Program-made: the position numbers and the translations under genes
Sequence record: NC_047713.1
Length of the DNA: 64,000 nucleotides
Reading direction: 5' to 3' (one strand)
The notes under the pieces: generated by a model
Database searches by the model: none
The model's input: only the letters and a program-made list of their open reading frames with translations
What the model was told of the DNA's origin: nothing
In this document: positions 56,391-61,546 of the stretch, piece after piece
How positions within the stretch are numbered: the first letter of the stretch is position 1
Layout: every line of letters begins with the position of its first letter

Positions 56391-56797
56391 CCCTGGAACT
56401 CAAAGACTGGTTGAATAGTTTAAACATGAGTAAGGAAGACCTTATTGATGGAGATCCTGATGTGGAGAAAGAGTATCCACCATTCATTGTCAATAAGTGT
56501 ATGTCTGGTCAGATGGATGCACTTATGTTTGCTAATGAGATGAATAAGTTCCCCTCACTAGATAAAAAGTTACAATATGATTTTTATCTAAATAGTTTGC
56601 GGAAGAGAAAGCGTTTCTCTCCTTGGTTAAGGAAGGATAAGATTAAACACCTTGAGACCGTTCGTAAGTTTTATGGCTTTTCCACTGAAAAAGCAGAACA
56701 AGCTTTGAATATTTTATCCAATGAACAACTTGACTTTATCTATGATAAGCTTGACACTGGGGGAACCAAACCATGCAAACGGACGAAAGGGGGGTAG
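56387..56797 (+). CDS. gp62: Clamp loader small subunit gp62
   Basis: LKDWLNS.N..K, YPPFIVNKC.S...D.LMFANEMN, QYDF.LNSLRKRKRFSPW, FYG.S.EKA.QAL.IL. Confidence 0.94.
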   Translation: MTLELKDWLNSLNMSKEDLIDGDPDVEKEYPPFIVNKCMSGQMDALMFANEMNKFPSLDKKLQYDFYLNSLRKRKRFSPWLRKDKIKHLETVRKFYGFSTEKAEQALNILSNEQLDFIYDKLDTGGTKPCKRTKGG

Positions 56798-57201
56798 TAT
56801 CTTGGGACCCCTCATATATGATAGAAGTATTTTTGTCAGAACCTGACGACTTCTTAAAAGTAAGAGAAACTCTTACTCGTATTGGTGTGGCATCTCGCAA
56901 AGAGAAGAAGATATATCAGTCTTGTCATATTCTACATAAACAGGGAAGATACTTTATAGTTCATTTTAAGGAACTCTTTGCCCTTGATGGTAAGCATACT
57001 ACAATTACCTTGAATGATATACAGAGACGCAATCGTATTGTTAAACTACTATCCGATTGGAACTTGATTGAAGTTTCAGATAGTATCGATATTACAGATG
57101 TTGCCCCTCTGAATCAAATAAAAGTTCTCTCATATAAAGAAAAAGAAGACTGGATACTAGAACCGAAATATAACATTGGAAGTGTGAAACGTTCGGAATA
57201 A
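56773..57201 (+). CDS. regA: Translational repressor RegA
   Basis: M.EV.L.EPDDFLKVRETLTRIGVASRKEKK.YQSCHILHKQGRYFIVHFKELFALDG, LEPKY.IG. Confidence 0.97.
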   Translation: MQTDERGVVSWDPSYMIEVFLSEPDDFLKVRETLTRIGVASRKEKKIYQSCHILHKQGRYFIVHFKELFALDGKHTTITLNDIQRRNRIVKLLSDWNLIEVSDSIDITDVAPLNQIKVLSYKEKEDWILEPKYNIGSVKRSE

Positions 57202-58256: not shown

Positions 58257-58530
58257 AACTATTAGAGTATTGGTCTTGACCAATGGAAAAGTCCTTATCA
58301 GTAAGATCGAAGAGATAGGAGGTGCTGATATCGGGGAGCCAGACTGCCGTCTAACCGACCCAGTATGGTATAATGATGAGGTGGAGGAAATGACCGAAGG
58401 GTTCAAACGCTTTCCTGGTAAGGGGATCACACCCGATACCAAGTTGGCCATCTCTTCTGTCAATATCTTGACTCTGGTTACCCCAGATAACAAACTCCTC
58501 AGTGAATACCTCGTGTTTATTAGTGATTAA
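58249..58530 (+). CDS. Small Sm/SH3-like barrel hypothetical protein (93 aa)
   Basis: RVLVLTNGKVLISKI, GEPDCRLTDP, I.S..ILTLVTP...L..EY. Coupled to gp43A. Confidence 0.7.
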   Translation: MDETIRVLVLTNGKVLISKIEEIGGADIGEPDCRLTDPVWYNDEVEEMTEGFKRFPGKGITPDTKLAISSVNILTLVTPDNKLLSEYLVFISD

Positions 58531-60005
58531 TGTCTAACAAGTTCTACACCAATGTTCAGCTTTATGGTAACAACATCCTCCTACGCGGGTATGAGAACGG
58601 AGAGAAGTTCCACACTAGGGAACAATACTCTCCTACACTATATGTGAGTTCCAAGAAACCCAGTAAGTGGAAAACACTTACTGGTGAGAATGTTCAACCA
58701 GTGAATCCCGGATCTATTAGAGATTGTAGGGATTTTATCAAGAAGTATAAAGATGTAGAGAACTTTAATGTGTTTGGTAATGAGAGGTTTGCCTTTCAAT
58801 ACATTGCAGACAACTATCCTGGGGAGATTGAATATGATCCCCAGTTGATTAATATCTTGAGTTTGGATATTGAGGTTGAGTCTGAACATGGTTTCCCAGA
58901 TCCAGAGTCTGCTAATGAGGAAGTACTACTCATTACTATTCAGGACTATGTTACCAAACAAATCATTACTTGGGGTCAGATAAAGCATGGGGAGTTTGAT
59001 AACCAACAGGATAATGTAGATTTCCGTCCATGTGAGAGTGAGTATCACCTACTGAGTGCCTTTATTCAGTGGTGGCAACAGAACCCACCTGATGTTATCA
59101 CTGGGTGGAACATTGACTATTATGATATTCCATACCTCGTCAGACGCATGAAGAGAGTGTTGGGTGATAAACTAGCAAGCACTATCTCCCCTTGGAAGTT
59201 CGTAACAGATGAAGAGCACTTCTTCAAAGGTATGAATAAACTATACTACAATATTGCTGGTATTACCCAACTAGACTACCTAGTTCTATACACTAAGTTC
59301 ACATATACGAACCAAGAGTCATACAGACTAGACCACATTGCTAATGTGGAGTTGGGTCAGCAGAAGTTAGACCACTCTGAGTTTGAAACTTTCAAAGACT
59401 TCTACCGAAAAGGTTGGCAGAAGTTTGTAGAATACAACATTGTTGACGTGGAACTGGTTGACAGGATGGAAGAGAAGTTGAAACTCATTGACCTTGCCAT
59501 CACTATGGCGTTCGATGCCAAGGTTAACTTCCAGGATGTATTCTCACAGGTGAGACTATGGGATACTATTATCTACAACTATCTCAGAGATAGAAACATT
59601 GTTATCCCCCAGAAGGAACAAACCAGTAAGAGTGAGAAGTTCGCTGGAGCATATGTAAAAGAACCCAAACCCGGTCTATATGAATGGGTAGTGTCCTTTG
59701 ACCTTAACTCCCTGTATCCTCACCTACTAATGCAATACAACATCTCTCCAGAAACATTGATGGAAGAGAGGTGTCCTAATATCTCCATTGAAAAGGTTCT
59801 CAATGAAGAAGTAACCTTTGAGATGTATAAAGACTATGCTGTTTGTCCTAATGGGGCAATGTATCGCAAAGATGTCCGCGGGTTCCTACCAACCCTAATG
59901 GAAAAGATGTATGATGAACGAAAGGCGTTCAAACAAAAGATGTTGAAGTCCAAACAAATCCTCGTTGATATCGAGGCTGAAATGAAAAGAAGAGGTGTAT
60001 TATGA
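58530..60005 (+). CDS. gp43A: DNA polymerase gp43, N-terminal half (exonuclease, motif A, first fingers helix)
   Basis: ExoI LDIEVES, ExoII VITGWNIDYYDIPY, ExoIII YNIVDV, motif A SFDLNSLYP, MYDERKAFKQKM, then a TGA stop. Confidence 0.93.
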   Translation: MSNKFYTNVQLYGNNILLRGYENGEKFHTREQYSPTLYVSSKKPSKWKTLTGENVQPVNPGSIRDCRDFIKKYKDVENFNVFGNERFAFQYIADNYPGEIEYDPQLINILSLDIEVESEHGFPDPESANEEVLLITIQDYVTKQIITWGQIKHGEFDNQQDNVDFRPCESEYHLLSAFIQWWQQNPPDVITGWNIDYYDIPYLVRRMKRVLGDKLASTISPWKFVTDEEHFFKGMNKLYYNIAGITQLDYLVLYTKFTYTNQESYRLDHIANVELGQQKLDHSEFETFKDFYRKGWQKFVEYNIVDVELVDRMEEKLKLIDLAITMAFDAKVNFQDVFSQVRLWDTIIYNYLRDRNIVIPQKEQTSKSEKFAGAYVKEPKPGLYEWVVSFDLNSLYPHLLMQYNISPETLMEERCPNISIEKVLNEEVTFEMYKDYAVCPNGAMYRKDVRGFLPTLMEKMYDERKAFKQKMLKSKQILVDIEAEMKRRGVL

Positions 60006-60160
60006 GTTTTCGTCACAAAACATATGGTGGTCTAGTTCATTATGACCACAATGATAAGATTATCGTCATTGAACGTCGATTGAATCCAATGCAACATCAC
60101 GCTATGCTTGTGAGTAAGTTGAAGGAAGAGTATCCAGAGTATCAAGTAGTTACTGGATAG
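60002..60160 (+). CDS. Micro-ORF inside the split gp43 (52 aa; not in the ORF track)
   Basis: MSFRHKTYGGLVHYDHNDKIIVIERRLNPMQHHAMLVSKLKEEYPEYQVVTG. ATGA overlap with the gp43A stop and a GAGGT RBS 5 nt upstream. Confidence 0.65.
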   Translation: MSFRHKTYGGLVHYDHNDKIIVIERRLNPMQHHAMLVSKLKEEYPEYQVVTG

Positions 60161-60375
60161 TGAGTGGTTTAGTTGCTGAGATTATGCAAGTCGTTACTAT
60201 GATTACTATGCTATTCAATATGTGCAATAGTAATGAGTTCAACAGACAAGCATGTATGAAAGACTGGGATACTTGGTTATTACCTGAGATATCCCGTGCG
60301 TGGCAAATTAAAACAGGTCAGGAAGCCCCTTACCAAAACGAGGAAGATGTGGTAGAATGGCACCAACAGCAGTGA
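60160..60375 (+). CDS. Second small ORF inside the split gp43 (71 aa; hydrophobic N-terminus, two Cys)
   Basis: GTG overlapping the previous TAG (an ATG at 60184 is the alternative). Contains MQVVTMITMLFNMC...ACMKDWDTWLLPEI.RAW. Confidence 0.6.
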   Translation: MSGLVAEIMQVVTMITMLFNMCNSNEFNRQACMKDWDTWLLPEISRAWQIKTGQEAPYQNEEDVVEWHQQQ

Positions 60376-60382
60376 GGTTATT

Positions 60383-61546
60383 ATTGGGTATCTGATCGGT
60401 GGAGCTGGTGAAGGACCTGATGAGGAGATCATTCAGTCGGATAGTGACTATTCTAAACTATCTGATAAACAACTGATCTACCTGCGTGGGCAAACTATTA
60501 AAGATATTGCGAAGTATCATAACTTCCAGCAAGTGAGAAAGATTACTCTAAACTCCGCTTATGGTGCTTTGGGTAACCAATACTTCAGATACTACAAACT
60601 GGCGAACGCAGAGGCAGTGACCTTCTCTGGTCAGTTGAGTATCCGTTGGATTGAGAATAAGATGAATGGATTCATCAATGAGATTTTAAAAACAGAGGGT
60701 AAGGATTATGTGATCGCCTCTGATACTGACTCTATCTACATTAACTTTGGTGATGTGGTGGATAAGTTCCTGAAGAAGTTTGATGGTGATAAAGAGAAGA
60801 CTGTATCAATGGTAGACAAGATCTGTAAGGATCAACTAGAACCATTCATTGATAAGTGTTATGCTCATTTGGGTGAGTATGTGAATGCATACGAACAGAA
60901 GATGCAGATGAAGAGAGAGAATATTGCTGATCGTGGTATCTGGACAGCGAAGAAGAGATATATCCTGAATGTATGGGATAGTGAGGGTGTTCGTTATGAG
61001 GAACCCAAACTGAAGATGATGGGTATCGAAGCAGTTAAGTCCTCTACACCTGCTCCCTGTAGAACTATGATTAAGGATGCTCTCCGTATTATCATTGAGA
61101 AATCTGAGGATGAGGTGATTGATTATATTGAGGATTGTAGGAGGAAGTTTAATAAGATGAAACCAGAGGAGATTGCGTTTCCTCGTTCCGTTAGTGATAT
61201 GATCAAGTTTCGTTCTGGAACAACAATATATGCTAAGAGTACTCCTATGCATGTGAGGGGAGCGTTACTATTCAATCATCACATTAAGAAGGGTGGGTTG
61301 GAGAATAAGTATTCTCTCATCAATAGTGGTGAGAAGATCAAGTTCTGTTACCTCAAGATTCCTAATCTAATTGGTGAGAATGTTATCTCATTCATCTCTG
61401 ATTTCCCTAGGGAACTTAAGTTGGAGAAGTATGTTGATTATGATACCCAATTCAATAAAGCATTCCTAGATCCACTTAAGATCATCTTGGATGCTATTGG
61501 TTGGAACTGTGAGAAGCAGATGTCCTTGGAGTCATTTTTCACCTGA
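60383..61546 (+). CDS. gp43B: DNA polymerase gp43, C-terminal half (second fingers helix, palm motifs B/C, thumb); probable ATT start
   Basis: Motif B QQVRKITLNSAYG, motif C ASDTDSIY, KKRY, KMMGIE. The frame is open from 60356 and the first canonical start (GTG 60533) lies inside motif B's helix. A GAGGT RBS at 60374-78 precedes ATT 60383. The gene call is high confidence; the start is moderate. Confidence 0.85.
   Translation: MGYLIGGAGEGPDEEIIQSDSDYSKLSDKQLIYLRGQTIKDIAKYHNFQQVRKITLNSAYGALGNQYFRYYKLANAEAVTFSGQLSIRWIENKMNGFINEILKTEGKDYVIASDTDSIYINFGDVVDKFLKKFDGDKEKTVSMVDKICKDQLEPFIDKCYAHLGEYVNAYEQKMQMKRENIADRGIWTAKKRYILNVWDSEGVRYEEPKLKMMGIEAVKSSTPAPCRTMIKDALRIIIEKSEDEVIDYIEDCRRKFNKMKPEEIAFPRSVSDMIKFRSGTTIYAKSTPMHVRGALLFNHHIKKGGLENKYSLINSGEKIKFCYLKIPNLIGENVISFISDFPRELKLEKYVDYDTQFNKAFLDPLKIILDAIGWNCEKQMSLESFFT

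Follow-up and report, generated by a model that had tools for sequence, protein, structure and literature searches.

Probable AUU initiation of the catalytic half of a split T4-type DNA polymerase in Synechococcus phage ACG-2014f

Introduction

Free-standing homing endonuclease cassettes split phage genes, as mobE does in nrdA of Aeh1 and mobA in the topoisomerase gene of T4. A split gene 43 (43A/43B) was described in the Aeromonas phages 44RR and 25 by Petrov, Karam and co-workers (summarised in PMC2988022 and PMC2677866), and the split subunits of phage 25 co-purify and are active (PMC2988022). As in those phages, the T4-type PolB considered here is encoded by two adjacent cistrons, and between such cistrons lies an untranslated spacer, a free-standing homing endonuclease gene or both. 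The two systems differ in that a non-canonical start was not reported in the Aeromonas phages (PMC2988022, PMC2677866), and in that the present split belongs to marine cyanomyoviruses and a very large uncultured marine clade, mostly without a spacer. No published report of a split gp43 or of a non-canonical start in cyanophages or ACG-2014f was found.

To our knowledge, natural AUU and AUC starts are very rare, the accepted cases in E. coli number two, and gene callers ignore these codons. AUU starts are known from the E. coli chromosomal genes infC, encoding IF3, and pcnB (PMC3592434). In E. coli reporters with a single cistron, AUU was 6-8 fold weaker than AUG; in the coupled infC context with its stop-GGU-AUU junction the difference was about 4 fold, a reduced but still substantial output (PMC3592434). 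Non-AUG starts have been described in one study as more sensitive to nutrient limitation and to ppGpp in vitro (PMC5499595).

Here, the gene for gp43 was analysed in a 64,000-nucleotide stretch of sequence record NC_047713.1 (the window), which corresponds to Synechococcus phage ACG-2014f_Syn7803C8 (KJ019058; Kyanoviridae, Atlauavirus; 100% identity over the region). From comparative sequence analysis we conclude that 43B, the catalytic C-terminal half of the split polymerase, is probably translated from ATT at 60383.

Results and Discussion

Organization of the split polymerase locus

The T4-type PolB gene gp43 lies in pieces in the window, in the order 43A, ORF52, ORF71 and 43B. The features of the region are listed below.

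58530..60005, + strand: 43A, the N-terminal PolB half, with the exonuclease domain, motif A and the first finger helix
60002..60160, + strand: ORF52, a small gene with no functional assignment, whose ATG overlaps the 43A stop (ATGA)
60160..60375, + strand: ORF71, a small gene with no functional assignment, whose GTG start overlaps the ORF52 stop
60286..60378, + strand: invariant block with zero variation in 13 strains and variable flanks, containing the promoter-like and Shine-Dalgarno sites
60330..60358, + strand: promoter-like site, with -35 TTACCA at 60330-35, TG at 60350-51 and -10 TAGAAT at 60353-58
60374..60378, + strand: Shine-Dalgarno (SD) sequence GAGGT, 4 nt 5' of ATT 60383 and unvarying across strains
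60383..60385, + strand: ATT, the proposed 43B initiation codon, ATC in other strains, aligned with orthologue ATG/GTG/TTG
60383..61546, + strand: 43B as proposed, 387 aa (MGYLIGG...), with the second finger helix carrying motif B, motif C, palm and thumb
60386..60532, + strand: 43B N-terminal 49 codons missing from the GenBank annotation, translated to judge from pN/pS
60533..60535, + strand: GTG, the GenBank 43B start, rejected as functional start

Alignment with the intact gp43 of P-SSM2 and S-PM2 showed that 43A and 43B, encoded on the same strand, together span the whole protein. The 491-aa 43A, with the C-terminus ...EAEMKRRGVL, occupied alignment columns 1-502. 43B showed homology from near column 497 through the last, with only a loose alignment of its ~50 N-terminal residues. 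Pfam assigned DNA_pol_B_exo1 and DNA_pol_B to 43A and DNA_pol_B to 43B. The break point fell between two finger helices, and the whole motif B helix must therefore be in 43B. Among GenBank phages, a split N-terminus of this type was confined to the ACG-2014f group. For the analysis of variation, 12 further ACG-2014f strains, chosen to cover the identity classes of 45 records, were compared with the window (13 strains in all). Over the annotated part of 43B pN/pS was 0.035, and over 43A it was 0.022. This strong purifying selection on both halves, together with the viability of the isolates, suggests that the two subunits assemble into an active polymerase.

ORF52 matched phrog_3538 and ORF71 matched phrog_3571 and phrog_703, all function-unknown families of PHROGs, and searches of Pfam and the ESM Atlas gave no function for either. 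In the 13 strains, pN/pS was 0.07 for ORF52, where diversity was very low, and 0.14 for ORF71, which showed third-position variation; both are protein-coding genes under purifying selection. ORF52 sits on the coupled start site that 43B uses in relatives where the two halves join directly, and at locus L022 an ORF52-like gene alone occupies the 43A/43B gap. A homologue of ORF71 was present at L017 and an ORF71-like C-terminus at L071; a scan for ORF71 over viral contigs returned a single locus. The ORF71 stop, TGA at 60373-75, overlaps the SD sequence of 43B and lies inside the open 43B frame.

No start codon would be needed if the 377-nt gap were removed at the RNA or protein level, by a group I intron, bypassing or a split intein. 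There are precedents: gene 43 of Aeromonas phage 25 is known to contain group I introns and homing endonuclease genes, and split inteins occur in cyanophage-like replication genes (PMC2677866, PMC2988022). At this locus, however, such removal is extremely unlikely. Rfam searches of 59500-61000, with E values of up to 10 allowed, gave no relevant match, and no match in six related loci reached the gathering score; the gap is filled by two genes under selection. Most relatives are split by a plain TAATG overlap that leaves nothing to splice, with the stop codon still present. 43A ends at the homology boundary, leaving no room for an N-intein, and 43B has only ~10 extra residues, without His-Asn plus nucleophile. 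The contigs contained no splice joints; RNA coverage was almost nil, the RNA runs yielding for this region a single 195-nt contig over 59900-60027. Neither the core structure and in-frame exon junction of a group I intron nor the hallmarks of a split intein were found.

Absence of a canonical start in the 43B frame

The 43B frame is open from 60356, directly after TAG at 60353-55, to the stop at 61544-46. The preliminary description had reported that the frame is open back to this TAG, with GAGGT at 60374-78, and that the first in-frame canonical start is GTG 60533. All of this was confirmed by direct reading, there being no in-frame ATG, GTG or TTG over 60356-60532. The GTG lies 2 codons 5' of the motif B Lys (AAG 60539) and 3' of Gln CAG 60527, and alignment with intact gp43 bore out the claim that a start there loses this conserved Gln. 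The in-frame near-cognate codons are ATT 60380, ATT 60383, CTG 60392 and ATC 60395. The chance of finding no canonical start over 59 codons is (61/64)^59, or ~0.06, which is not itself improbable; what gives the missing start its weight is the homology of the stretch to essential polymerase sequence and the selection acting on it.

Start codons of 43B orthologues

A protein search returned thousands of 43B-sized proteins from marine metagenomes, 384-392 aa long and 70-96% identical, with 387 aa as the commonest length. Most of the 120 orthologues listed had the N-terminus MGYLIGG or VGYLIGG, where the window has I-GYLIGG, starting at 60383. The codon before GYLIGG, determined for 81 loci or strains, was ATG in 48, GTG in 11, TTG in 1, ATT in 12 and ATC in 9, and a pattern scan of viral contigs gave 96 canonical versus 12 Ile-codon stretches. 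The check on orthologues proposed in the preliminary description thus located the Met codon (ATG, GTG or TTG) precisely where the window has ATT 60383. As Met is inserted at AUU by the initiator tRNA, the window protein would have the N-terminus normal for the family and a length of 387 aa.

It was also considered whether the real start is a neighbouring near-cognate codon, since ATT 60380, CTG 60392 and ATC 60395 are all in frame and near the SD sequence, and strain C16 carries TTG at 60392, from which its 43B is annotated. This is unlikely, however. Other strains have CTT or TTT at 60380, the codon is only 1 nt from the SD sequence, and in L020, an ACG-2014f-like viral contig, it falls out of frame. 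A start at 60392 or 60395 would lose the Gly-Tyr(-Leu) that follows the start, which was invariant in 16 diverse orthologues and which is preserved in the population, where the changes are synonymous. Of the two alternatives that the preliminary description had allowed, ATT 60380 and CTG 60392, each is accordingly less likely than ATT 60383, which is the preferred start.

Variation among ACG-2014f strains

The 13 strains were colinear, without indels. Codon 60383 was ATT or ATC in all 13 and ATG in none, and the near-identical contig L020 has ATC at this position. Third-position variation in the 43B frame starts right 3' of 60383, Gly 60386 being encoded by GGG, GGC, GGT or GGA. Over 60386-60532, pN/pS was 0.19 in the 43B frame versus 2.1 and 2.8 in the other frames, and pS was 0.41, ~4x that of the rest of the gene. 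This pattern of selection indicates that 60386-60532 is translated and that coding constraint extends back to the codon right after the ATT. On the same evidence, 43B translation must begin at or just before 60383, where no canonical codon is available.

The annotated GTG 60533, being the first canonical start and the one used by GenBank, could be taken as the true start, with the upstream frame a non-functional remnant, but the strain data make this exceedingly improbable. At this codon 10 of the 13 strains carry GTT or GTA, and five strains (C58, C80, US17, US43 and C90) have no in-frame ATG, GTG or TTG before TTG 60569, which lies 3' of the motif B Lys. A product begun at GTG 60533 would lose the conserved Gln along with the greater part of the motif B helix. 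Of the three frames across the 49 codons 5' of it, only that of 43B shows purifying selection, and these codons are conserved throughout the orthologue family.

The missing start might likewise be put down to an error of sequencing or assembly or to recent breakage of the gene, as ATT differs from ATG by one base (T for G at 60385). ATT or ATC was present, however, in all 13 strains, in L020 and in contigs of three independent metagenome runs, which match the window over 60286-60510. Sequencing error is thereby excluded. The isolates form plaques and 43B is under the strong constraint given above, so that this reading is barely credible.

Canonical in-frame codons upstream of or near ATT 60383 were found in some strains. 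GTG occurs at 60377 in 5 of the 13, and C16 is the one strain with TTG 60392. When the pattern was extended to 41 unique genomes, by inference from representative strains, identity classes and annotation patterns and not by reading each genome, 14 were without a canonical start before motif B, 10 had GTG 60533 only, 2 had TTG 60392 and 15 had GTG 60377. At several ATT loci from metagenomes, a GTG or TTG stands in frame 4-5 codons further 5'. Given these codons, other starts may serve in such genomes, and there the ATT might be a mere Ile codon.

Relation of 43B to the upstream reading frame

The ORF71 stop lies within the open 43B frame and 43B is in the +1 frame of ORF71, which raises the question of a fusion by +1 frameshift at CAG-UGA (60370-75) or of other recoding, for example from ATG 60357 in frame 0. 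The variation at 60377, GTT/GTG, resembles that of a synonymous Val codon, and the block 60286-60378 is invariant, as a recoding signal might be. Nevertheless, the frame relation varies among relatives. L020, with a spacer 1 nt shorter, reads TGA GGT TTT ATC; its ORF71 remnant is in frame with 43B, and the in-frame TGA two codons 5' of the ATC excludes a frameshift or fusion with the upstream ORF. At L017, the closest relative outside ACG-2014f (43B 96% identical in amino acids), the ORF71 homologue is also in frame and ends in TAA, followed directly by ATG GGA TAC. At L018, L062 and L075, which are ATT/ATC loci, the nearest upstream ORF ends 27-50 nt away. The small ORF from ATG 60357 shifts frame relative to 43B in L020. 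Moreover, there is no slippery site, as tRNA-Gln on CAG cannot re-pair on AGU, nor an SD sequence 5' of the ORF71 stop, nor a stable RNA fold. The shift-prone codon, stimulatory SD sequence and conserved frame relation of a prfB-type +1 frameshift were all absent, and recoding is very unlikely. The sole arrangement common to all ATT/ATC loci was an SD sequence followed by ATY.

The duplex of GAGGT with the 16S 3' end was calculated at -7.7 kcal/mol, inside the range of the ATG orthologues, and a GGAGG-type site lies 3-5 nt upstream in every ATT/ATC locus. A stronger SD sequence that might make up for the weak codon at ATT/ATC loci was not found (mean -9.4 versus -8.8 kcal/mol at ATG loci, p = 0.36). 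The RNA fold of 60280-60420 was not stabler than that of shuffled sequence (z = +1.2), and structure therefore does not explain the invariant block.

Inserts at the 43A/43B junction and a shared module

In the clade, the 43A stop and the 43B start usually overlap by 1 nt (TAATG/TAGTG), without a spacer, and all 52 unique junctions of this direct kind start with ATG or GTG. ATT and ATC were seen only at junctions bearing an insert, at 13 of 37 unique ones (Fisher p = 2.5e-6, kinship uncorrected). Some of these inserts are small ORFs, some an HNH-endonuclease-like gene and some a spacer of 60-70 nt; that of the window is ORF52 plus ORF71, and at L104 and L209 just the 60-70 nt spacer plus the module described below is left.

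The ATT/ATC loci share a module made up of a TGnTAnAAT extended -10-like motif, a 14-23 nt spacer, a GGAGG-type SD sequence, 3-5 nt and ATY. It was present in the window and at L020, L018, L062, L054, L209 and L075. The -10-like motif is TGgTAGAAT (60350-58) in the window and TGgTATAAT at L018, L062 and L209. TGnTAnnnT at a similar distance was found at 12 of 13 ATY junctions, 3 of 24 insert junctions with a canonical start and none of the 52 direct junctions. The same module occurs at L026, where the start is TTG. The TGnTAnAAT motif of L062 lies in non-coding sequence, an argument that it acts at the DNA level. The promoter of the window is a consensus match only, such matches being no commoner there than in shuffled sequence. 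The link between ATT/ATC and an inserted promoter-like module is a new observation that has not been reported before.

In a tree of 99 43B proteins, the ATY state required at least 7 changes, and each ATY group adjoined near-identical ATG or GTG alleles with a direct junction. This is the pattern that would be expected for a mobile or repeatedly acquired insertion. The weak start codon thus seems either to be carried along by a mobile insertion or to arise after one. At L018, L054 and L062 the insert carries, exactly at the junction, a 155-aa ORF matching PHROG 374 'HNH endonuclease' (E 8e-62); the L018 ORF gave no match in a PDB sequence search. These loci resemble cassettes of the mobE/mobA type in the HNH-like ORF, predicted from sequence, at the junction and in the occurrence of insert-bearing alleles beside near-identical insert-free alleles, as for a mobile cassette. 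The window differs from that type in that its gap holds two small ORFs, in neither of which a nuclease signature was found. The possibility that ORF71 is a remnant of the HNH-like ORF of L018 was rejected (BLASTP E = 17).

Proposed initiation mechanism

According to the preliminary description, 43B apparently has to start 5' of GTG 60533 from a codon other than AUG, of which ATT 60383, following GAGGT, was judged the most likely. The start positions of the orthologues, the population genetics and the exclusion of rival explanations support this view. As at known AUU/AUC starts, no usable canonical codon was found, the orthologues start at the same position and an SD sequence lies at a working distance. 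We infer with high confidence that initiation at AUU 60383 is SD-directed. The initiator tRNA would read the near-cognate AUU, placed by GAGGT 4 nt upstream, and the product would be the same MGYLIGG... protein of 387 aa that relatives make from ATG.

Two routes to the AUU can be envisaged. The first is re-initiation after termination of ORF71 at the UGA 7 nt upstream, in a geometry close to that of thrS-infC. The second is de novo loading on a short-leader transcript from the extended -10-like site, which would start near 60365. With moderate confidence, both are considered to contribute. Initiation would be expected to be several-fold below that from ATG, on the basis of figures from E. coli reporters, the host here being marine Synechococcus.

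The locus resembles infC and pcnB in the use of a near-cognate AUU for AUG behind an SD sequence. It further resembles infC in the position of the AUU a few nt past the upstream stop, the junctions reading UAA GGU AUU in thrS-infC, UGA GGU UAU UAU U in the window and UGA GGU UUU AUC in L020. 43B thus appears to be a new, well-supported example of the known rare mechanism of AUU starts of the infC/pcnB type. Unlike in those cases, the product is part of a phage replicase; infC and pcnB encode a translation factor and a poly(A) polymerase. IF3-mediated feedback would here be an analogy with published cases, and ATT and ATC alternate between strains. A further difference is that close relatives have ATG, GTG or TTG in place of the 43B codon, which is associated with an inserted DNA module.

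That the AUU might throttle or autoregulate the replicase, as the preliminary description had suggested, is reasonable by analogy with infC. More speculatively, the weak codon could serve to balance the subunits after uncoupling from 43A, to regulate replication or to protect against a homing nuclease. A broader reading, which we put forward tentatively and regard as rather doubtful, is that the ATT/ATC start belongs to a portable expression module that arrives with mobile junction insertions; alternatively, the G-to-T change in the start codon may guard insert-bearing alleles from a junction-specific homing nuclease. In the first case, the module would consist of an extended -10 promoter, a strong SD sequence and a deliberately weak start codon. 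The catalytic half would be uncoupled from 43A, and its synthesis would depend on initiation fidelity (IF3, ppGpp and the nutrient state of the host). If this were true, phage replication would be tuned to the physiology of nutrient-limited marine Synechococcus.

The near-identical alleles with ATG, GTG, TTG, ATT or ATC at one site form a natural series for the study of start-codon strength and translational coupling in marine cyanobacteria. They also suggest that mobile insertions can alter the expression of a replicase subunit.

Annotation of 43B in public genomes

Because gene callers ignore AUU and AUC, the annotations of 43B diverge and are truncated. In 41 public ACG-2014f genomes the gene is annotated in four ways, three of which truncate it. 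In 24 genomes the annotated protein has lost motif B in part or entirely, and in 2 more it lacks three conserved N-terminal residues. With the corrected start, the 387-aa 43B matches thousands of environmental orthologues.

Position of the gp43 break and genes at the junction

The gp43 DNA polymerase gene is broken at the same point in marine viral and metagenome contigs (L020-L209) that represent a very large clade of uncultured marine phages. In this clade, the two halves mostly meet in a plain TAATG overlap of stop and start codons, and the conserved C-terminus of 43A (...KRRG-x-x*) also serves as the Shine-Dalgarno site of 43B. Within the GenBank phage set, ACG-2014f appears to be the sole cultured group with gp43 split in this form.

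The 43A-43B gap holds an ORF52-like gene alone in the related loci L022 and L023 and an ORF71-like gene in L071, each with a normal ATG for 43B. Therefore, the 43A-43B junction has repeatedly carried ORF52- and ORF71-like genes as passengers. A 155-aa ORF matching PHROG 374 'HNH endonuclease' was detected between 43A and 43B in L018 (2015-2482) and at the same place in L054 and L062, and it was found in several unrelated 43B lineages. In L104 and L209, just 60-70 nt of spacer is left, with the same end comprising a promoter-like motif, a Shine-Dalgarno site and an ATT, as if the 155-aa ORF had been lost from the junction.

The 5' junction of the ACG-2014f insert (59989-60004, GAGGTGTATTATG), which terminates in the start of ORF52, is similar to the 3' junction (60374-60385, GAGGT-TATTATT), which terminates in the proposed 43B ATT. 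The original coupled site, now used by ORF52, may have been duplicated, with the diverged copy serving as the ribosome-binding site of 43B. The junction spacer is not the same in other strains, and thus the resemblance could be due to chance.

Diversity across the insert

Comparison of 13 strains (the window and 12 colinear ACG-2014f strains) revealed very unequal diversity along 59950-60560. The inserted cassette was nearly without variation (pS of 0.017 for ORF52), and no changes were detected between 60286 and 60378. In the first 49 codons of 43B, which adjoin the cassette, pS was 0.41, fourfold higher than in the remainder of the gene. Such a pattern looks like an insert of recent spread, flanked by a tract of recombination or co-conversion.

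Changes were densely clustered at 60185-60285 within ORF71 in strain US42 and in the metagenome run X1. Among the changes in X1, one nucleotide is deleted at 60247 and another is inserted after 60252, so that together they leave the frame intact. Outside this segment, the 43A-43B region of US42 and X1 is near-identical to that of the window. The segment is a small recombinant patch.

Start region of 43B

Four different 43B starts are annotated across the ACG-2014f GenBank records (e.g., KJ019058, KJ019146, KJ019085 and KJ019037).

Annotated 43B starts (window coordinates)
60377, GTG
60392, TTG
60533, GTG
60569, TTG

Motif B is partly or wholly missing from the proteins beginning at 60533 and 60569.

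The invariant block also contains a 12-codon ORF in frame 0 (ATG 60357 to TGA 60393-60395), which overlaps the start region of 43B. This ORF lacks conservation in other strains and probably has no meaning. The 43B initiation region (60376-60386, GGUUAUUAUUGG) is rich in U/A. A RegA-type translational repressor is encoded a few kb upstream of 43B (56773-57201, as annotated in KJ019058).
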